DNA of 64,000 nucleotides from Adineta vaga (Eukaryota > Animalia > Rotifera): contig CP075494.1 of the NCBI GenBank assembly GCA_021613535.1, forward strand, positions 9,300,001 through 9,364,000. The letters run 5' to 3'. The notes under the pieces are model-generated. The model saw nothing but the letters and a program-made list of their open reading frames with translations. It did not search any database and was not told where the DNA came from. The stretch's first letter is position 1, and each line of letters begins with the position of its first letter. The translations under genes were made by a program, and so were the position numbers. This document shows positions 1,329 to 38,591 of this stretch, one piece after another.

Positions 1329-3149
1329 ATGGAAAAGCAATGCTGTGTTGTGATTATTGGTGCAGGTATTGCTGGACTTTCATGTGCAAAATATTTGATT
1401 GAAAATGATATACAAGATTTTGTTATACTTGAAACCAATAATCAAATTGGTGGACGTTGCCAAACGATTAAATTAAGTATGGCTTTATTAAAAAGTTTAT
1501 ATATATATACTAATCAATGATTTTTGCTATTTTAGTGGATCAATCAATTGAATTAGGTACTGAACTATTACAAGGTAATTCAACAAATAATCCATTGTAT
1601 CAATTAGCTGAAGAACATCATTTATTCGATCAGAGTGACAGTAAGTTTTTTATCCTTGACTTCTTTCATGTTCAAAGTACAAATGTATCTCTATCAGCCA
1701 GTAATTATCCGTAATTAAAGGATCCAGGTTGACTATTTCTCTTTTCATCTAGGTGGATTTGATCGAGATGATTGTTATCATGATGAAGATGGCGAATCAA
1801 TTGATGAAGATATTATAAATGAAATTCGAACCATTTATGATGAAATTTTAGAGAAGAAAGTACCAACATATCCATATGAAAATTATCCTGATTTATCATT
1901 AGGCGAATTTATTTTAACAGAATTTGATCAATATTTTCAATTGAAAAAGGTTGCATTAGATAAAAATGAAATTGATCAAAGAGAAAAAGTTATTGATTGG
2001 CTAAGTAAACAACATCCAATTTTAAATGGAATTGGTTGTGAGAAATTAATGGATGTTTCAGTTCAAGGTAAATGAATATTTAGTTCGATTTTGACAGTTT
2101 TTCACATTATTTCTGTATTATTCGAGGCTGGATTTCGTTTGAACGTCTATCAACAGATGAAGAATCCCATAATGTTGACAAATACATTCAAGATGGCTTC
2201 TCAAATTTTTTACAAACGATTTTTGAAAACAAAATTACAACAGAAAAAATTCATTTGAATTCGAAAGTCAAACGTATTACTATTCACGAAGCAAATCAAT
2301 CGGTTAGTATTGAAGTCATTGACCAAAATCATGAAACCATAACCTATCAAGCAAAACATGTTGTTTGTACCCAATCAATTGGTTGTTTAAAGAAAACAAT
2401 GCACGAAATGTTTGTACCACCATTACCATATTCAAAACAAATCTCAATTGAAAAACTCGGTTTTGGAACAATCAATAAAGTATAGTTTCATTCATTGTCT
2501 TGTTGTTTTGTGTTCTTATTTGTTTTCTTCAAGATCTATTTGATTTTTTCTCAACCATTTTGGGATGTTGATTTTAATTCATTCAACTTTCTATGGAAAT
2601 CAAATACCGAATGGAAATTAACTTGTCTGAAAAATACAGCATATGATGTAAGTTCAATTCTTTGCATGATTATCTTTTTTCAAAAACGAAATTCTCGTTC
2701 TTATGTCTTTGTTTTAGAGCCAATGGTATAAAAGTATAACAGGCTTTTATGTTCACCATAATTTATCCAATACCCTCGTTACACAAATTGGAGGCGAAGC
2801 TGGCAAATATATCGAAACTATTCCAGATGAAATACTATCCAATTGTTTTCAAGAATTGTTTTGCCGTTTCTATCCGGACATTCAAATACCAAAACCGAAT
2901 AAATTAATTCGATCACAATGGTTTAATAACACATCTACCTATGGTTCACATACATTTATTGCATTAGGTTCAACTATACATGATATCAAAAGATTAGCAC
3001 TACCATGGCCAAATAAACCAACGGAACCGCTCGTTCTTTTTGCAGGTGAAGGAACACATGAAAGATTTTATGGAACAGCACATGGAGCTTTTCTAACGGG
3101 TATACGAGAAGCAAAACGAATAGTTGAATTGTATAAAAATAATATATGA
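1329..3149 (+). CDS. Flavin-containing amine oxidase (spermine/polyamine oxidase family), multi-exon
   Basis: N-terminal FAD motif IIGAGIAGLSCA..GGR, ELGTELLQG, KLGFGTINK and C-terminal LFAGEGTHERFYGTAHGAFLTGIREA. Exons join across short GT-AG introns. Confidence 0.9.
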
Positions 3150-3224
3150 AGAAATAAAATATCATTTTGGAAAGTAATAAGAACTGAGGAAGCATGTGAT
3201 CAAATTTTCTTTTTGTTTTTTAAC

Positions 3225-4045
3225 TTAAAAAGTACAACTAACTTTCAACGATATATGCTCCACTATTATCCATGACCTGTCGCCAACGCTAGGGTAAAGA
3301 AAGGATCCCATTTTCGTAGAAGTCCTGGGATTTTTCGCCAAAGTAGTTGAGCAGATCCATTTATAGGTCGTTCTCGTCGTCGAATTATTTTTGCTTAAAT
3401 AATTCGATAAAGAGTGAAACAAGTGGTAGTCTGTAGGAGCCAAGTCTGGTGAGTAAGGGGGATGTGGAACCGTGACCCTTACGAGCTTCAATAATTTTTC
3501 ACGCGTCGACTTTGCAATGTGGGATCTGGCGCTGTCATGCAAGAAATTAGTTCTGTGTTGCTTCCCCCTGAAGTTTTGTTGCAACTTGGTCCCATTGCTG
3601 ACAATAGATATCAGCAGTGATTGTGCAACCAGCTGGAATGAGTTCCCAATGAATAATTCCTTTTACACTCTACCAAACACTCAGCATAATCTTCTTTGAA
3701 TGAAAGTCACTTTTGGGTGTTGCTACACCTGTTTCTCCCGCTCCCAGCCACTGTCGCTTGTGCGTGTGGTTAACATATAATACCCACTTCTCATCCTCAG
3801 TAATAACATTGTGGAGCCATTGGTAGTTGCGATGAGATGTCATTAATTCCATACAAGCGACAATCCTATGTTGAAGCTGATGTGCTGACAACTCATGTGG
3901 TATCCGAACACCATATATTCACGTTTTGCCTAATTCATGAAGATGTGTTTCCACTGTAACATGGGAGCATCCAAGTTGTTCTGCTAAACATTGTGTTGTC
4001 AACTGAGGATCTTCTTCGATAAGCTACTTTAATCCATCCATATCC
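3225..4045 (-). mobile_element. Degenerate mariner (Tc1/mariner) transposase remnant, 5'-truncated and frameshifted
   Basis: VITEDEKWVLYVN, KIMLSVW, FLHDSARSH and HPPYSPDLAPTDYHLF mariner motifs are spread over several frames. No TIRs were recognisable. Confidence 0.93.
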
Positions 4046-4054
4046 GCCTGCAGT

Positions 4055-4097
4055 TCTGATTTAGTAAAATAAATTTCAATACAAGTTTTTCTAATAA
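4055..4097 (+). repeat. ~43-bp imperfect direct repeat, copy 1 (copy 2 at 5476-5518)
   Basis: tctgatttagtaaaataaatttca..acaagttttt(t)ctaata occurs at both places. Confidence 0.85.
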
Positions 4098-4681
4098 TTT
4101 TTCTAATTTGCTTAGGTACTTGGAATAGGTCTGATACTTCTGGGATGGATAGAATTTATTATTCTGCATCGAATGGTATAGGTTGAGAGGGGGGAGGTTA
4201 TTGACCAAGAACCAGGGATTTCACCCAAAATACTGGGCAAATGGATGACTACACCCAGTAAGCCTTGCTGATATTCCCTTTGAGAGTTGGAATAATTACA
4301 TGCGAAATGTTTCCGTATGAATGACAACATAGTATTTTCATTGCTATAATCTTTTGTAAAAGAAGATTTTATACAACTGTAAGTTACGGAAATCCTTAAA
4401 AATCAGTTTCAATGTAAATTTGTACGTTTAAATAATTGTAGATGTCATATGTTCTATACTTTTCATGTGGTAGATTAGAAAAGTAGAACTTTTCCTGACA
4501 TAGACTATTTGAAGCATCATCTAGTAACTGTTTGTATATTAGCTTTGTTACATCTTGTTACAGACCGTCAAAATATTTGAGTTATATATAGATCGGATTG
4601 AAAGAATGGATGTTATGACATTTCTCTGTTAATCTTAAGCAATTAATGTAAAGAAAATGTAGATATTATTGTGATGCTATC

Positions 4682-4916
4682 CCCAGGACGGACGTTCCGG
4701 CCTCCGGATCCGAAAGGAACCTTCCAGAAATCACGCCTTTCTGAGGATATTCCGGACAGTTCCAGCTAGTTCCAAAAGGTTCCGACTGGAACTTACTGGA
4801 AGTTAGTTAGAAGCGAGTGGAAAAGTCCGAAAATATCTGGTTCGGAATCCTGCTTCCATGAAATTGCCGGAATGTTCTGGTTTCGACCGGATCCGGCTCG
4901 GATTTTTCGACCTGGG
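4682..4916. mobile_element. 235-bp GC-rich non-autonomous DNA element (MITE) with CCCAGG...CCTGGG termini and 2-bp TSD (TC)
   Basis: tc|CCCAGGACG...TCGACCTGGG|tc, with many internal TTCC/GGAA/CCGG motifs. GC-rich in an AT-rich background. Confidence 0.85.
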
Positions 4917-16628: not shown

Positions 16629-17386
16629 ATGACACAACCGGTGCCTCCTAGAGTAAGATTATTATTTATTTACTATATAATCATCACTAATTTCATTATT
16701 TTAGACGTCCGCTCATAAACCGTATCTTGACGCTATCCGTGCAACACTTCAAGCTGCATTCTGTATTGAAAATTTCGAATCCCAAGTTGTCGAACGACAC
16801 AATAAACCTGAAGTTGAAGTGAAGTATGTTTATTCGAAATATTGATAAAACGAAAGAACAAGTATCTCTTTCTATTCAATTTAGATCTTCAAAACAATTA
16901 TTACTTAATCCAGTTGTGGTTAGTCGTAATCAAAATGAACGAATTCTCATCGAAGGTTCTGTTAATTCCGTCCGAATAAGTATTGCTGTGAAACAAGTAA
17001 ACATTTATTCTATTTCTTCTATCTTTAATTTCAAACTTACTCTATAGGCGGATGATCTTGAAAAGATTTTATGCAAACGTTTAATGCGTTTTATGATGCA
17101 ACGAGCTGATGATTTTCATATACTACGACGAAAACCAATTCCTGTATGTTAATTAGTTCATTTCTTCGATCATTGTATAGATGAAATCATTTTCTCTTTC
17201 ATTTAGGAGTATGATATTAGTTTTTTAATCACAAATTTTCATGCTGAAACCATGTATAAACATCGTTTGGTTGATTTTATAATTTATTTTCTCGAAGAAA
17301 TCGACAAAGAAATCAGTGAAATGAAATTAGCTGTTAGCTCACGTGCTCGAATGTGTGCAGAAGAATTTTTAAAGAAATTCAACTAA
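16629..17386 (+). CDS. ARPC4: Actin-related protein 2/3 complex subunit 4
   Basis: [79 protein letters not shown]. Confidence 0.97.
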
Positions 17387-17892
17387 TCATTCCATTCAAT
17401 ATATAGGAATTTAATAGCTACACTATGATAATGTATATCTATCTTGAGAAAAAAAAATAGCAAACTTATCTTTTCGTATAACGCTGTGGTTCGCATGTGA
17501 AATGATTGTATTTGGTGATTTTCTCTTCCTTCTCTTTTTTCTTTTCTTCGTTATTGATGGCCATCTTTTTCTTTTGCTTTTAATATATACATATACATAC
17601 ATTAAACATTGTTTACATTTATACGTTCAGTTTTATATTTGAAAAGAAATACAAACATCGATTATTAACATTTTCTTCTTTGATTTATAAAGAAATTCTG
17701 CTTCGTTTTCAATGGTTTTGTATCTCTACGTTCAGCAGTGTATTTGTTCGTAAGAAATGAAATACAAAATTAGATAAAAAAATATGTGTCGTCAATTGAG
17801 ATCATATGTTCGCATAAATCCTACTATTATATGTTGTCATATGCACTCAAAACCTCCGCGAACACATTACTAGTGAACCTTGTTCTCTCAAT

Positions 17893-17975
17893 ATTGCATC
17901 AGGGTATTGCGAAAGAAAAGAAAAAAGAAGAACGCAAATGACGTCACCAATACACAGAACTCGATTCCATATAAA
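17893..17975 (+). promoter_or_regulatory. AOX promoter: CARE/AARE, CRE, CCAAT, TATA
   Basis: ATTGCATCA 17893-17901 (reverse complement TGATGCAAT), TGACGTCA 17939-17946, CCAAT at 17947, TATAAA 17970-17975. Confidence 0.6.
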
Positions 17976-18020
17976 CATTACGATAGGCGTTCTATACTAT
18001 ATGATTTTCTAGGATACAAA

Positions 18021-19245
18021 ATGAGTTTAATGATAAGAACAACAAATTTATTACTTCATAATTCTCATTTGACTTCGTCAACAGTAAAATGTTTATCTCA
18101 GTTGAATTATATTCAACCATGTGTCTCTCTTCATACATGTTTACCGTTGATGAACGAAGGACAACAGCAACATCATTTAACAGAAATTGAACAGAAACGT
18201 AAGTAGAAAATATTTCATACCTATTGATAATTGTTATTGTGCAAAAAATTTGAAAAATTATACATAGCATCAAATGATTATATGTTACATCATGAAATCT
18301 ATTCGGAAAAGGAACTGCAAAATATCAAAATAACTCATAAAAAACTCGAATCGTGGCATGATCGAGTTGCTTATGCAGCTGTTCGTACATTACGTTTATT
18401 TTTCGATACATTCACCGGTTATCTTCATGGATCGACAATGACAAAATATGGGTATCGAAAACAATCTATGACGGAAGAACAATGGTTACGACGTTTTATA
18501 TTTCTTGAAACTATTGCTGGTGTACCAGGCATGGTTGCTGGAATGACTCGTCATATGAAATCACTTCGTAAGCTGAAGTTAATATGAAGCTGAAGATCAG
18601 TTTCGATATTTAAAGGTACAATGCGTCGTGATCATGGATGGATACATACACTTTTGTCTGAAGCTGAAAATGAACGAATGCATCTATTAACATTTTTAGA
18701 ATTACGACAACCAGGATGGATGTTTCGTGGATTTGTTCTTTTAGGTCAAGGTGCATTTTTCAAGTAAATATCGTTCTTATTCTATTCAATATATCTCAAA
18801 AGAGATTTATTTTTTCAGTGCATTCTTTCTGACTTATCTTCTTTCACCAAAAATATGTCATCGATTCGTTGGTTTCTTGGAAGAAGAAGCAGTCATAACT
18901 TATACTCGATGTCTTGAAGATCTTGATGCAGAAAAACTTCCAGCTTGGTCTCATTTACCAGCACCACAAATTGCTAAGAAGTATTGGAAATTATCAGCTA
19001 ATGCAGTTCTAAGAGATGTCTTATTAGCTATACGTGCTGATGAAGCTACTCATCGTCAGTATGTATTTACAGCTCTAAATCAGATCTATAGATTTCTCAT
19101 TGTAAACTTTTCTTTTAGAGTTAATCATAAATTAGCTGATGTTGGACCTAATGCACCAAATCCATTTTTGATTGAAGTAAATCAAACACAAGATCCACCA
19201 AGTATCGAAGAACAACGAACAATCGATACAGCAGATAAAAAATAA
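18021..19245 (+). CDS. AOX: Mitochondrial alternative oxidase, 5 exons
   Basis: Diiron motifs [28 protein letters not shown] and RADEATHR. The N-terminus is Ser/Thr/Leu-rich, lacks acidic residues and resembles a presequence. Confidence 0.97.
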
Positions 19246-19846
19246 ACATTTATTTTGACTAAATTCTTTTCGCTTTTATAAAACAATATTTACATTCTCT
19301 AATATCGATGAGTTTGAAAAAAACATGTAAAACTCCAATTATGAGCAAATAACTTACCACTTGATTGTAATGATATAGATCTACATTCGAAATTCATATA
19401 TATTCAATATATTATTGATTTATTCAAGTCACGAGGCAATAAGTGTGCGTAATATTGGATAAATAGTCGATCGGAGTATGTAGTACACTTCATTTCTTTC
19501 CTTGGTCTTCTATCGTCGATACACTCCATTGATTTTACATCCTTACATTATCTAATACGATGACATATGTGCGATATGTGTTTCTCTTCCTATTCTTTTT
19601 AGTCCAATAATTATTATTTCAAAGTATACTTTGAAAATCAAGGCATATAATGACGTGCATAATCAAAATGTGTACTCTTTATCTCCTTCCGAAGAAAAAT
19701 CGAGAAGCTTCTGCATTGCTTATTCTTAACCCAACCTCCATACACGCCCCTTTCACTTCATAACCGTATATAAACCTTAGACAAAATCTGTATATTTCAT
19801 TTTTTGAAAAAGTATTTCTTACTCTTCAACGTTTTCGAATCAAACA

Positions 19847-20129
19847 ATGGAAAAAATTACTGAAGCATGCAAAGCTGGTGTTGAAAAAGTCAAAGAAACT
19901 GTCTCTGGAACCAGTAAAGAAGCTAACAAAGAAGTTGCCAAAGATTCCAATCAAAGTTTAGGCACACGTGCTGAAGCATGTTGCAATGCTGTCGGTTAGT
20001 AAATTCTTATAAAAAAACGATCTCTACTTCAATTAATAAACATTCATATTTTCCTATTTAGGTGACAAAATCGATGAAACAAAACATGCTGTTAAAAAGG
20101 AAGAACACAAACAAGAAGCAACTCATTAA
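19847..20129 (+). CDS. grg1: 71-aa Grg1 (fungal glucose-repressible / ccg-1)-like hydrophilic protein, 2 exons
   Basis: Exons 19847-19994 and 20062-20129 give MEKITEACKAGVEKVKETVSGTSKEANKEVAKDSNQSLGTRAEACCNAVGDKIDETKHAVKKEEHKQEATH, with the Grg1 signature SKEANKxVAKDS..GTR. TATATAAA at 19767. Confidence 0.9.
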
Positions 20130-20519
20130 ATTTGCTCAATACGACTGTGTACAATAGATAATCACAAATTACGAACATTTGTTTTCGTTTATATCTTTAT
20201 AAATTAATCAATACTAACAGAAATAATAAAAAATAGAAAAATATCTTTCATAATCATAGTATTTAATTTATCACTAGTAGCAGTAGCAAAAATGTTCTAT
20301 AACAAGAAAAGAATGTTTGTTTCTCATCGTATTGGGATGATGTTTAAACACATCGATTTATCAGTAGTGTAACAAAAATATATACATAATTTATTATTAG
20401 TTCTTCATTGTATTTTTCATTATCAGATCACACGTGCTTTTTGTTTGTAAACACACTCATAATGAGCAAAAATGTCTTGTAACATACAAAGTAACAGTCT
20501 ATTAAAAATCTTGATTTAC

Positions 20520-23500
20520 TTATGATAGATCATCGATTTCAAATCTGTTTATATCAATTAGTGTTTTCTATTATAAAAAGAATAGATAATTTACACATGT
20601 ATCATTTTTATTTAATAAGAATTAAACTTAACTTGTGTAGTAGTCTGTGATTGTTTTATTGTCTAATAAAAGAAGGAGATGACAGATTTATTCAGTAAAG
20701 TCTTACTGTCTTACCTGAATGCAATATTGTTTCTGATTGATTTCTATGATCAATTGTTATCGTAGTAATTGATTTATTTGTATTATTTTTAGAAGACGTT
20801 GATTTTGAAACGTCTGTTGATGTTTGTTTAGATCGTTTGAAATCATCGTTTGTTTCGTCATTGAGTATCTGTTGTAATAGAAGATTATCTTGAAAGAGAT
20901 TATCACTTGTCATTGTTGTTGATATTCTTGGTAAGACAAGAATTTTTGTTGTTGATCGATCTTCAAGTAATTTCAATCCATGTTTCGTTAAAGAACGTCT
21001 TATAAATACTGGCGCTTCATAAACACATTTAGTTATCTGATTTCGAACAGAACCAGTAATAAGTAGAAGATCTTCATATAACTGAATAATATCATCTGTT
21101 GAACATGTTTTATCATTATAAATGAGTAAACCTGCATTTAATAAGCGTCTATTGATTAGAGTAAAATCAGTCATTAGTCGATTCTCGTGTGTTTTTATTC
21201 CTGATTGTTGAAATGGTGAAATATTTGGTAGAATACGTAATGCCAAATGAATACCTCGAAAAGAAAAATCATGAACACAATTCAGATTTTTCGTTTGACA
21301 ATTACTATTTGAACATACTCATTTCAAGCCAAACGATATCCCATAATGCATATGTATTAAAAATATGAAATAATTTTTGTTTTGAAACGAAAAATACTGT
21401 GACATTGGTCAAACATTTTGCTGTTGATTCATGTTTTTCACCATTATTCATCAATAGATCATGAAGACCAATACAGTGACCAGAACGAAATGAATAACGA
21501 CGATGTATTCGTTCACTTGTAGCTGGATGCATTTGTCGATATTTTTCAAATGTTTCATCGAAATATTCATCGAAATTTTCCTCGATTTGATTATGATGAT
21601 AATATTGATGGATACCATCATCAATTGCAATCGATTTATCTCGGAATTTATTATCCGTTGAATTCGTCATTAGATGGTACCATCGAATATAAAATCCATC
21701 TTCAAAAGCAATACGAACTTGTGTGGTAGAAATCGGATATTTATCATTGAAAGATATAATGTCTGTTACTGTGTCTTTTTCAATAGATCTAAAAATCAAT
21801 AAATCGATGGGGAGTAAAAATATTCTAATCATACTTGATAGAATTAATGCCACTAACATAATTTGTATCTACGGATAATATAGATTCTTTTTTGGACCTT
21901 ATCACAGGAATCGTACTGTAACTGAAGTCTTGTCTGATATATTTTCCTTTAGATTTGATATGATTATAGGGATTTAAAATCTGTTGTGTTGTTGATGTCA
22001 TTTTTTTTGAACGATAATTTTCTTTCCATCGTACTTCACTTTGAGATGCGTCTATATCATAGGGATCGAGTTTCCATTCTTCAACGATACCATTTACTAA
22101 TAGATAAACTCCATTGAGTTGATCATTTTTATGCCATAAGAAATCTTGCCAAGAAAAGCTTTGTGGATGTAATAAAGTTTCATTTTCAAAACGTTTTATG
22201 TTTTCATTTGGCAAAGCTTCAAGTAATAATTGTTCAATTTCATTTCTTTGATCAACATTCAATCGTTCATTAGAATAAAGCCAAGAGAATTGTCGAATCC
22301 CAATCATTGGTGAAACAGATGGCATTGTCGATGGTATATGTAAATGAATGTGCATCGTTTTTAATGATTGTTCAAGTAAATCACAATCATCAACATCAAG
22401 AACTCCTCGAGCACGTATTTGTGCTATACCTCGTTTTGCAGTATTGTATAATAAATTAATCGTATGACGTGTTTTGATACTAATTATAGTACCTGGATGA
22501 GTTTCTTGCATTAAAAGAACATGATTTAAAACACTTTTAATGTGTTGAAGTGAAAGTTCACGAATACGAATTCGAATATTTTCTAAAAATAAATTTGAAA
22601 GAGTTGAAAATATGATAAGGAACATAAAATAGTATTTACCATTCTCTGTCAATCGATGTATTATTCGTAGAACTTGTTCTTCAGATGATATATAAGCTAG
22701 ACCAATATCATAACTAATGCTTATATATCTATTGAGAATACAATCAACTAATAGTTGAAGAGGTTGAATCAAAAATAAACATAGAATAATAGATTCGATT
22801 AAACTTAAACTTTTAAGAATATAAAAAGTTAAACATAATTGATTTGTATGTCGTCCTTTCTCAATTAAAATGAAATGAATTATACAACTAAGACAACGAC
22901 AAGTAATACTAAAAGTATATACAATAATCCATATTAGATTTGAACTAGGAAATTTTTGTTGCCGATAATAGGAAAACCAATAATATATTTGAATATAATC
23001 GAAGATTAATAATAGACTAGAAAGAATTTCTAATGTAATATGAAGTGTTTGTATGGTATTATCTAATGATTTATTGCAAAGATTTGTGTGAAGTTGATAG
23101 ATAATAATCATGCATTCGATTAGAATGACAAAAAATGTAAGTAATAAAGAACGAAATAGTTCTTTGAAGAATTGATATTGTTGATCTTGATGGTTAGAAT
23201 ACCAAGGTAGACATTTTTGCCATTGTCGTGTGTTTGTACGTATAAAATTTAATATAGATCGTATTCGAGTTTTACCAATTATATGTTCTTTGATTGTATC
23301 CAGATCAATAAATTGTTTCGGTGTATCAATTGCTTGATCACATAAGGAATTTAATGTGTGAAGTCCATAGGATGATAATTGTCCATTATAATAATTCGAC
23401 CAAAAATGTGTCTTTTGCAATCTGAAATGAATCATGCCTTGTTTCAAATTGATACTAAGAAGATATTGCAAACCTTAAAATTCTTATTCTACAATCTTCA

Positions 23501-25509
23501 AATGTTTGTTTGAATTCTGATTTCGATATGGGAACTGTTACATATGCTTGACAATGATCACATTTAATTGTATCAATATGACGTCTTGATAGAAGATTTT
23601 CCTTAAGTAAATCTTCTTTTTTCTCATCAAATGGTGATTGAATATCAATTGCTTTTTGTACAAAAAGCCAATCGGCTGTTGCTAGAAGTGGATTTTTCTT
23701 TAATGATCGAATCATTTCATTCTGTTTTATTTTCAATTCTTTTATTATTTGTATCATTGTTTGTTTGATTAATTCAGATGTTTGATCCAATCGTAAAATA
23801 TGTACTATCTTCGGTATTGTCAAAGCATTTACTAATGAAAAAACGATTCGATCATTGTAGATATTATTCAATAATATTGTTTACCTGTGCATGTAAGAAA
23901 TACAATTGCTGTTGTATGAATAAGCATGATTTCTGCTTGATAATTTTCTTTAATTTTACTATTGAATAATGTCAATGCAAGAACTAAACTTACACCACCA
24001 CGTAAACCTGACCACATTGTTACAATCGAATCTTTCCATGTAAAACCATATGCAATTTGTTTTAATATAAAATGAATACACAAAAGCATAAGACCTCGAA
24101 CTAATGTTAATATAATATAAATCAAGAGTAATTGTGGTAATGAACTCAATAATGATAACATCTTATCACTTCCACTGTATGTTTTAAGTAAAATGACTCC
24201 AACAGTAATAAATATCAATGAATTTGCTACATAGGCAAGCAATTGCCATGTTTGTTCAGATATTGTTATTGCAGATACACTAAAACAAGCACGATTCATA
24301 TTTAATGTTAAACCAAGTAGTACGACACCGATAACACCAGATGCTTCAACAGCTTCACATGTTAAATAAACAAAATAGGACATCGTTATTGTAATACATG
24401 TTTCTAATTCACCAGCATCAATACGATACAAAGTAAATATAGTTATATGAGCCATAATATACCCTAGATGGGATGAATATATACATGTATATTGATCAAA
24501 AAGATGATGATTCGATTCTTACCTATTAAAATAGCTGTTGCAATCGTTTTTAAGACAAATTTAAGAAGATAAATAGCAGTAATTTTACGTTTAATAAGAA
24601 ATCTAATGACATGTGCACATCGTTCGGAATTAATTCCAAGAAGAGTTGCACGAGTTTCTTGTAAAACTTCTTTATCCGACTTAATTGCTTCATAAATTAA
24701 ATTTTTTATTAGAGTATAAATAGTTATTGCCGCAGCATCATTCAATAACTAAAATAGAATTGTATCTTCATATATAACTTCGACAATTATCATACCGATT
24801 CTCCTTCGATAACAGTCGATAATGTTTTCAATGATGTCATTGACTTCAATAGACTAACAACAGATACAGGATCAGTTGCTGAAACAACTGCTGAATATAG
24901 AACAGCTTGATCCCATGTCCAACATGTTTGAACATCATTGGTATGTTCATTTTCATACCAATACATCACAGCTAGAGTTGTCAATGCCACGGATATAAAG
25001 AAACCTATTTAGATATAGTATTAGATTCGCAGACTGTCTGATGGTTTCTGTTTCTTTCTTTTTTTTTTGAACAAAACAATGCGTACCGAGAATAGCTAAT
25101 GTAAGAATTTGTCCAAGACATTTGATGAAAATATGTGGATCACATGAAAAAGCACTTTCAAAGATTAGAATTGGTAAAAATATAGCGAGAATTTGAACAG
25201 GTGTTAAATTAGCAATAAACGTAAATCGTTTAATCAGTTCATATTGATAGAAAGCACCAAGAACAGCACCAACAAGCATTAAGATTACCGTATATGGAAG
25301 TGATAGATGATAATGTCTTTAAAATAGGAAAAATAAAAGTTCAAGTAGATTATATATAGATTATACCTGAGTATTTTTCGAAGAATAGTAGCAAAGAAAA
25401 GTACAAGAAATGGATAGATAAATTCAGGTCCAAGTCCACGTGTATTAGTTGGAGATATTTCATTGCAGGGTGTACCGTAGACATTTCTCTGTTCAATTAA
25501 CGATGCCAT
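20520..25509 (-). CDS. SLC9C1: SLC9C-like (sperm-type) Na+/H+ exchanger with VSD-like and CNBD-like regions
   Basis: FLPILIFESAF, SATDPVSVV, IEGES(L)LNDAAAI and WSGLRGGVSL, followed by a 4-TM bundle, ISYDIGLAYISSEEQV and a CNBD-like GVYLLVNGIV. Apparent frame shifts coincide with introns. Confidence 0.85.
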
Positions 25510-37342: not shown

Positions 37343-38591
37343 CTTGATCTATTCAGTATAAATCTAGAAAAATAAGAAAAATGTATTCTATTTGATAATA
37401 ATCGACATTATTATATGAATATGAAGTTTTTCTCTGCTTTTTTTTTTCAAACAAGAATAGCTGCATATGTATGTATGCACATGTTGAAAGTGTTCGGTTG
37501 TCGATAGAAAAAATATTGCCAAGGACGAATAAATAGGAAAAAGTTGAAGTTTTGGAAGAATGAGAAATTTTTCTTTTTACTTTTTCTTGTATACTTCAGT
37601 CAGTCATAGAGAATAAAGAAATTGCTTACACAACAAATAGTAAGAGAGAATATTACAGAATCAGCTTATTGATCCTTTAGGAATAAAAATCGATTGATTA
37701 ACATAAAAATCTTTTATTATAGTGAATAGATATTAAGTACATGACAGTACAGACTTACATACTCGAAATAGACATGTTATCAATATCGATGTATAATGCA
37801 TTGCCAATCAAAATAATTTATCTTGTTTACACAAAGCGTTATGCTTGAAAAATTTCTGTGGATTTTTTCTAGATCTTTCCATTAGGTCAAAAATATTGAT
37901 TAGATTTATTTTCTCGTTATAAGTGAGAAGAGTATCTAATTAAAACATCGACGTGTGTTGTATGTAGTAAGAAGAAAAAGAAAAAGAATATGGTAGAATA
38001 TAAAAAGCATGTCAGCTTTACAATGGTTGCTACTTACTAGAATTACTTTTACTTTTGCTTGCTCGACGACTCAGACTACATAGTCGACATAAGGTTTCTT
38101 CTCTGTCTAATAAATTGCCTGATTTCACAACGAAGGAAACTAAAAGCGACAAGAAACACGTTTTTTGTTGTCATAAAAGACACGATAGACAATTGTGTTC
38201 AAGTTAGAAAGATAAATTTGAATAAATGCTATTAAATCGTCTTAAGAAACTATATGTACGGATAACAAGATTTGAATTAATACAGTCATTAATTGATTAA
38301 CTAATATAATATTCGAAAAGTATCGAACTATCGATATAAATATATAAATATATACTTGTTTTTTCCGATCTAATGATACATATCGTAACAATTCTATATT
38401 CAACAGATCAAATCTAATTGTTTTGTTTTTCAAATCATTTTTGTCCATAAGAAAATGACGTCATCTATCGACACATTCTGTTATATCGTTTTGTTTTTTT
38501 TCAAATCTAACCATATTCGATGATCCATAAACAATTGAACTATTTTATTTGTTTCGTTATCATTCATTCTACTTCTTATTTTTAGATAGAT

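Follow-up and report, generated by a model that had tools for sequence, protein, structure and literature searches.

Bdelloid rotifers are a textbook case of massive horizontal gene transfer (HGT) and combine it with extreme tolerance of desiccation and radiation. In these animals an import of stress genes has been proposed both for a fungal-type alternative oxidase (AOX) and for the Grg1 family. The Grg1 family was found in desiccating Adineta ricciae by Boschetti et al. 2011 (as told in PMC10809525). Adineta vaga has eight Grg1 genes, of which six show strong over-expression once the animals are rehydrated; BLAST returns fungi as the best hits of the genes, and a fungal HGT has been hypothesised for them (Moris et al. 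2024, PMC10809525). Horizontal transfer of rotifer AOX was proposed by Weaver & McDonald 2023, as cited in bioRxiv 10.64898/2026.06.01.729305, and the entry for the A. vaga AOX gene FUN_022082 in Table S5 of Moris 2024 (PMC10809525) is flagged as HGT by the Alienomics pipeline, with best hits in Saitoella and Spizellomyces. Here we analyse a 64 kb stretch of A. vaga chromosome 5 (positions 9300001-9364000, the window; the genome comprises 100.8 Mb in six contigs), in which an AOX gene and a Grg1 gene are immediate neighbours. We find that the two are probably separate fungal-type stress genes that have been linked since before the split of Adineta and Rotaria. The two proposed transfers and the stress induction, which an initial annotation of the window had put forward, were already in print, and both genes were already annotated. 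The components are known; what is new, and modest, is the conserved linkage, a paralogue-specific cAMP response element (CRE) and the matching radiation response. In the literature searched we found no paper that treats AOX and Grg1 together.

The AOX gene consists of five exons on the + strand (18021-19245), which form an open frame of 330 codons when joined. The Grg1 gene follows on the same strand after a gap of 601 bp and has two exons (19847-20129) encoding 71 aa. Searches of the window were run exon by exon, and full-length comparisons used the annotated A. vaga proteins I4U23_024892 (330 aa) and I4U23_024893 (71 aa), which map exactly onto the AOX and Grg1 exons, respectively, with 100% identity for Grg1 exon 1. 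The introns measure 69, 48, 55 and 60 bp in AOX and 67 bp in Grg1, and all are GT..AG. They are spliced in transcript contigs assembled from three runs, the RNA label of which is only guessed: the AOX joints are exact (18198 to 18268, 18567 to 18616, 18763 to 18819 and 19058 to 19119), and the Grg1 joint falls at 19993/4 to 20061/2. A DNA run is unspliced at all of these joints, and its contigs are contiguous. The gene positions, the host-sized introns and the TATA boxes at both genes thus agree with the initial annotation. The features of the two genes are as follows.

17939..17946, + strand: CRE/ATF palindrome TGACGTCA, 82 bp upstream of the AOX ATG
17970..17975, + strand: AOX TATAAA box, with transcript contigs starting just after it
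17986..19387, + strand: extent of the AOX mRNA in transcript contigs (contig starts at 17986 and 17995)
18021..18198, + strand: AOX exon 1, N-terminal presequence region (frame, transcripts, alignment)
18268..18567, + strand: AOX exon 2, with the Dikarya-type insert and the LET iron-ligand motif (Pfam, 97 bits)
18616..18763, + strand: AOX exon 3, with the NERMHL motif (Pfam, 68 bits; alignments)
18819..19058, + strand: AOX exon 4, with the LEEEA and RADEATH motifs (Pfam, 128 bits; alignment)
19119..19245, + strand: AOX exon 5, C-terminus NPFLIEV, lacking the animal xPG[KQE] (frame, alignment)
19693..19707, + strand: conserved Grg1 promoter block AGAARAATYGAGAAG (A. vaga, A. ricciae and Rotaria sordida), at most loosely similar to a heat-shock element (HSE)
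19731..19739, + strand: conserved Grg1 promoter block CCAACCTCC
19767..19776, + strand: conserved Grg1 TATA box TATATAAA, with TATAAA at 19769
19847..19994, + strand: Grg1 exon 1 (Pfam, 56 bits; transcript joint)
20062..20129, + strand: Grg1 exon 2 (frame, weak Pfam match, transcript joint)

Exons 2, 3 and 4 of AOX each match the Pfam AOX profile PF01786 (cut-off 22.7 bits) and together cover its positions 1-208 of 216. All four di-iron ligand motifs (LET, NERMHL, LEEEA and RADEAxH) are kept in the alignments, and the protein matches the Trypanosoma AOX structure 3VV9 with E = 9e-67. Its first 40 aa are rich in Ser/Thr and hold two Arg/Lys and no Asp/Glu, a composition that makes the N-terminus basic and fits a mitochondrial presequence without proving one. 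The window copy (AOX-A) would accordingly be read as a di-iron ubiquinol oxidase, most likely imported into mitochondria. It is predicted to pass electrons from ubiquinol to oxygen, bypassing complexes III and IV, and this bypass may limit over-reduction of the quinone pool and the formation of reactive oxygen species when respiration restarts or is damaged.

Exon 1 of the neighbouring gene matches the Pfam Grg1 profile PF11034 with 56.2 bits (cut-off 25), and profile positions 51-67 are weakly matched by exon 2. The encoded protein is very hydrophilic (grand average of hydropathy, GRAVY, -1.03), and its structure model is a low-confidence helix-loop-helix with a mean predicted local distance difference test (pLDDT) value of 56. 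Both properties fit a largely disordered 71-aa protein (Grg1-A) that would most likely act as a hydrophilin-like protectant.

The initial annotation had set adjacency beyond the A. vaga genome as a test of its proposal. The order ARPC4-AOX-Grg1-exchanger recurs in two assemblies of A. ricciae, with an AOX-Grg1 gap of 558 bp, and in three assemblies of R. sordida, with an ORF-free gap of 3.4-5 kb (ORF, open reading frame). As the adjacency is present in both Adineta and Rotaria, it cannot be younger than their split. A. vaga has exactly one further AOX locus (AOX-B), on chromosome 2. It runs collinear with the window from ARPC4 through AOX and then continues with a laminin-G gene, which in the window stands beyond the Na/H exchanger on the downstream side; about 5.2 kb carrying Grg1 and the exchanger are missing. 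The B locus of A. ricciae has the same layout as that on A. vaga chromosome 2, ARPC4-b561-AOX-LamininG. As an animal gene, the exchanger must have stood at the locus ancestrally; a single deletion at the B locus is therefore the simplest explanation, and on that explanation the AOX-Grg1 linkage is probably older than the bdelloid genome duplication. A tblastn search with E values up to 100 found no Grg1 relic beside the chromosome 2 AOX, and the idea of a Grg1 remnant at AOX-B was dropped for that reason.

The two AOX loci also differ in other respects. A membrane-protein gene lies between ARPC4 and AOX-B (G000:C2:10672500-10673289, or 2500-3289 of the locus stretch, in which AOX-B occupies 3555-4769), and the A locus is without it. 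The annotation of A. ricciae names this gene cytochrome b561; no b561 hit turned up in a Pfam scan of its A. vaga ORFs. In several bdelloid annotations b561 and AOX are given as one protein. In A. vaga the upstream ORF stops 266 bp before the AOX-B ATG, therefore these fusions are probably merged gene models. AOX-B is read as a single 135-aa ORF across the position of AOX-A intron 3 (4186-4593 of the locus stretch), and one intron has therefore been gained or lost between the paralogues since the duplication.

The promoter of AOX-A carries a conserved element. The palindrome TGACGTCA is found upstream of AOX at -68 in A. ricciae and at -99 in R. sordida, and in all three species the AOX TATA box follows it after about 30 bp. 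It is rare in this AT-rich DNA, with two occurrences in the window against 0.5 expected, the other occurrence being at 38456-38463, and it is absent upstream of AOX-B. The conservation of this CRE across genera suggests control of AOX-A by basic leucine zipper (bZIP) factors of the ATF/CREB type. The Grg1 promoter has conserved footprints of its own: neither AGAARAATYGAGAAG nor CCAACCTCC has a match at the promoters of AOX or of the Grg1 paralogues. A palindrome resembling a heat-shock factor (HSF) site, GAAGCTTC, lies at ~19704 in A. vaga; neither this palindrome nor a TGACGT half-site at Grg1 is conserved in Rotaria, and the Grg1 promoter holds no canonical three-unit HSE. Of the bZIP/HSF wiring envisaged by the initial annotation, the bZIP half thus has a conserved candidate site at AOX, and the HSF half finds no conserved site at Grg1. 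The bZIP genes FUN_018596 and FUN_016964, both induced by radiation, are candidate factors for the CRE and for block AGAARAATYGAGAAG. The two genes each have a TATA promoter of their own.

Published expression data point to a similar response of two A. vaga genes with consecutive identifiers. In the entries for Grg1 FUN_022081 the log fold change is 1.59 (false discovery rate, FDR, ~7e-6) 2.5 h after X-rays, -0.07 at 0 h and 1.62 at 8 h; for AOX FUN_022082 it is 1.65 (FDR 6.7e-6), -0.13 and 0.78 at the same times (Moris 2024 Tables S3/S5, PMC10809525). In these tables, X-irradiation of desiccated animals thus raises both about three-fold at 2.5 h (PMC10809525). The identifiers are taken as the window genes because the chromosome 5 AOX alone has a Grg1 neighbour. 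Table S5 of PMC10809525 also contains a second PF01786 entry. If this entry is AOX-B, both copies are radiation-responsive, and the induction of AOX would be independent of the Grg1 neighbour and of the CRE.

Several results weigh against reading the two genes as imported neighbours with a common history and response, and we give those on the pair here and those on the origin of each gene below. The whole block is syntenic, so that the conserved adjacency need not mean selection on the pair. A promoter logic common to AOX and Grg1 was dropped, as the CRE is found at AOX-A only and no motif occurs in both promoters. No contig bridges AOX and Grg1 (19387-19607) in the three transcript assemblies, although contigs of this kind cannot prove absence; operon-like co-transcription was dropped as a candidate on this ground. 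The expression comparison covers three of the many contrasts in Moris 2024, and the equation of FUN_022081 and FUN_022082 with the window pair is inferred from their consecutive numbering. In the sets given in PMC10809525, FUN_022081 is the sole Grg1 common to rehydration and radiation and AOX belongs to the radiation-specific set; regulation is therefore partly, not fully, in common. The stress module of the initial annotation is accordingly supported in part, by the linkage in A. ricciae and R. sordida and by the matching entries in the published tables, as assigned by identifier; a bridging contig and a common motif were not found.

Transcript contigs bearing on Grg1 span 19607-20300. Those of two runs reach 100-160 bp upstream of the Grg1 TATA box (window 19607-19850), which could mean that transcription of Grg1 also starts further upstream or that AOX is weakly read through.

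A stronger proposal is that AOX and Grg1 were captured together on one Dikarya DNA fragment before the bdelloid genome duplication, and that selection keeps them as a co-regulated mitochondrial-stress and desiccation unit. We consider this improbable. Both genes are of Dikarya type and are immediate same-strand neighbours across two bdelloid families, their linkage probably predates the genome duplication, and their radiation responses match in the contrasts cited above. The linked Grg1 also matches Grg1 of Sordariales in its length of 71 aa and its C-terminal ATH, and has an identical 16-aa core. We roughly estimate the chance adjacency of one of about four pre-duplication Grg1 loci to AOX at ~1e-3, an estimate made after the fact. 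The synteny in fungi that the initial annotation had proposed as a check, however, is absent from a small sample of loci examined within 10 kb by annotation and tblastn: AOX and Grg1 are adjacent at none of seven, comprising the AOX loci of Saitoella, Spizellomyces, Terfezia and Daedalea and the Grg1 loci of Fusarium, Remersonia and Cordyceps. With seven of seven negative, fungal AOX-Grg1 synteny was rejected, and co-transfer is left without evidence of this kind. The separate promoters, the unbridged interval, the Rotaria spacer that has grown without gaining an ORF and the equal degree of synteny of the neighbouring animal genes also speak against a maintained unit. If true, co-capture would count among the rare cases of a functional gene pair passing from a eukaryote to an animal. 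Two domesticated foreign genes that have retained their microsynteny and are induced partly alike are the best reading of the pair, rather than a demonstrated cassette transferred or transcribed as one.

The assignment of the smaller gene to a fungal family, as made by the initial annotation, holds. In a database search all named non-rotifer relatives of Grg1 are fungi, so that named relatives are either fungal or bdelloid. Ungapped alignments with fungal proteins show 49-57% identity along all 71 aa, in a fungal sample limited to Sordariomycetes. A 16-aa core is identical to Fusarium, the C-terminal ATH is that of Grg1 in Chaetomiaceae (Sordariales), and 19 columns are invariant between the rotifer protein and the fungal members, with the core SGTSKEANKE.AKDSN..GTR. 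The intron lies in codon 50, and those of Fusarium follow aa 30 and 41; as the positions differ, the intron was gained in the host, and inheritance of the intron from a fungus was rejected. The alien index of Grg1 exon 1 is ~15, below the usual threshold of 45, and is one of the results that count against a foreign origin. It is low because the protein is too short; shortness may also explain the missing HGT flag for Grg1 in the pipeline of Moris et al.

The A. vaga genome holds about eight Grg1 loci, mostly as tandem pairs on ohnologous chromosome pairs, which implies that there were already four or more loci when the genome was duplicated. The A. vaga Grg1 paralogues do not have the codon-50 intron of the gene beside AOX. 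The other loci are located at:

C4:12270335-12270965, Grg1
C1:2243483-2244124, Grg1
C2:11534549-11535062, Grg1
C5:7983299-7983807, Grg1
C2:12425949, Grg1
C5:7280788, Grg1
C3:5814945, Grg1

The origin of AOX was addressed with a tree of 83 proteins (11 rotifer sequences and one close relative, 26 animals, 38 fungi, two green algae and five others). In the careful maximum-likelihood (ML) tree, calculated under the LG+C20+F+G4 model with posterior mean site frequencies (PMSF), animals without rotifers form a clade with ultrafast bootstrap (UFBoot)/SH-aLRT supports of 100/98, and rotifers form another with 100/100 and a stem length of 0.73. Rotifers group with Dikarya at 95/87 and with fungi as a whole at 92/81; Ascomycota, Basidiomycota and rotifers form a trichotomy. 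The rotifer sequences fall into two paralogue clades, each with sequences from Adineta and Rotaria.

Three further characters do not depend on branch lengths. The first is an insert, measured between the conserved FD..[ST] and WL.R anchors and called Dikarya-type when it exceeds 20 aa after a GY.H motif. The segment is 10 aa long in green algae, 11 aa in 19 of 20 animals and 12-13 aa in chytrids, and reaches 21-30 aa in Ascomycota and 29-30 aa in Basidiomycota; in rotifers it is 20-28 aa (10 of 10), and all rotifer copies have the GY.H start of the Dikarya-length insert. The second is the C-terminus. Of the 19 animal AOX that could be scored for the motif NP[YF]xPG[KQE], 15 have the NP[YF]xPG core, which is followed by K, Q or E in 14; none of ten rotifer AOX has the core. 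The third is the set of intron positions: Lingula and Actinia have six in common, A. vaga, A. ricciae and R. sordida have four in common, and none of the rotifer four coincides with any of the six, the nearest being off by 11 nt. All three point away from vertical descent of rotifer AOX. Rotifers also have NERMHLLTF in common with fungi, where animals have NERMHLMTAL.

The second group of contrary results concerns this origin. An approximately unbiased (AU) test does not reject a tree constrained to unite rotifers with animals (lnL 6.5 lower, p = 0.114), and with a quick tree this constraint was even slightly better (p = 0.61). The tree alone therefore does not settle the origin of AOX, and long-branch attraction is possible given the rotifer stem of 0.73. 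The alien index of AOX is ~22 (Saitoella 4.9e-98, Dendronephthya 2.1e-88, with Actinostola entries left out), which is indeterminate and, like that of Grg1, below the threshold. Of the tree and alien-index checks proposed initially, the best tree favours horizontal acquisition without settling it, and the indices do not reach the level of a call.

These results leave some room for a bdelloid AOX that is a fast-evolving ancestral animal gene, with its fungal look due to long-branch attraction and convergence and with Grg1 as the only foreign member of the pair. AOX belongs to the ancestral animal gene set and occurs widely in Spiralia, the gene sits mid-chromosome among animal genes, and its fungal and animal bit scores are close (346 and 315); the AU results likewise leave space for this reading. 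It would then have had to acquire a Dikarya-length insert with its GY.H start in all rotifer copies, to lose an otherwise near-universal animal C-terminal motif and to retain none of six ancient animal intron positions, and it would have to be misplaced both by the best tree and by the independent conclusions of Weaver & McDonald 2023, in the form cited by the bioRxiv preprint, and of the Alienomics flag in the table entry. We therefore regard this alternative as unlikely. A fungal origin of AOX, in agreement with the literature, is the favoured and quite probable reading without being proven; it is the acquisition suggested by the initial annotation, while the AU test keeps an animal affinity in play. 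The case for transfer is less decisive than alien-index flags suggest, and the rare insert and the introns weigh as much as the tree.

The AOX entries of Actinostola, Rhizoclosmatium and Parachlorella outscore their identity with rotifer and starfish queries alike. A special closeness of these entries to rotifers was set aside as improbable, as they score equally with the starfish query and each groups in the tree with the taxon it comes from. Merged tandem genes or two-domain models are the likely cause, and such entries would distort an alien index.

Contamination or misassembly, for which we found nothing in favour, is refuted by the position of the locus in a chromosome-scale contig at a GC content of 0.32 against 0.31 for the window, by rotifer-sized introns that are spliced in transcript contigs while the DNA contigs are contiguous, and by the same locus in independent assemblies of three other bdelloid species.

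With this pair, one can test concretely and at low cost whether foreign genes that lie side by side come under common regulation once domesticated. The CRE is conserved at the Grg1-linked AOX copy only, and the linked Grg1, as identified by its number, shares the radiation response of AOX.

The flanking genes are ordinary animal genes, as the initial annotation had stated.

16683..17386, + strand: 3' part of ARPC4 (Pfam ARPC4 PF05856, 54.5 bits on 17252-17383)
20692..25509, - strand: SLC9C-type Na/H exchanger (Pfam Na_H_Exchanger, 68 bits, and a weak cNMP-binding match)

ARPC4 is collinear with the chromosome 2 copy and with the annotated ARPC4 of A. ricciae and R. sordida. Within AOX, intron 4 (19059-19118) measures 60 nt, keeps the frame and contains no stop codon; its retention would add 20 residues, and all contigs splice it. 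A 9-bp deletion at 19320, in the AOX 3' untranslated region, and a dozen substitutions separate the runs from the reference and represent allelic or strain differences.

Among described systems, the bdelloid Grg1 family (Moris et al. 2024, PMC10809525; Boschetti et al. 2011) is the closest to the smaller gene. The window gene is one of its eight annotated A. vaga members and, by the identifier, the one in the common rehydration and radiation response; its position beside AOX goes unmentioned in these papers. Fungal Grg1/CCG-1/CcgA proteins (PF11034; glucose-repressible and clock- or light-controlled) resemble rotifer Grg1 in their length of about 70 aa, invariant core, hydrophilic and poorly ordered character and induction by stress. 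The window gene differs from them in residing in an animal genome, in its single rotifer-sized intron in codon 50 and in its reported induction by rehydration and radiation rather than a shown effect of glucose.

For AOX, the animal enzymes of the type described by McDonald, Vanlerberghe & Staples 2009 (Ciona, oyster, Lingula) belong to the same family, have the same presumed role in stress-tolerant invertebrates and, by the AU test, may still have a common descent with the rotifer gene. Unlike them, rotifer AOX is without NP[YF]xPG[KQE], reads LLTF instead of LMTAL, carries an insert of 9-17 aa and has none of the six intron positions. The AOX of Dikarya (Neurospora aod-1, Aspergillus aoxA; structural reference Trypanosoma brucei, PDB 3VV9) has the same Pfam domain and the four di-iron motifs, and rotifer AOX has NERMHLLTF, the length of the GY.H insert and the tree position (95/87) in common with it. 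Unlike the Dikarya genes, the rotifer gene resides in an animal genome, is AT-rich, has four rotifer-sized introns at positions unseen in the sampled fungi, was duplicated by the bdelloid genome duplication and has a promoter with a conserved CRE.

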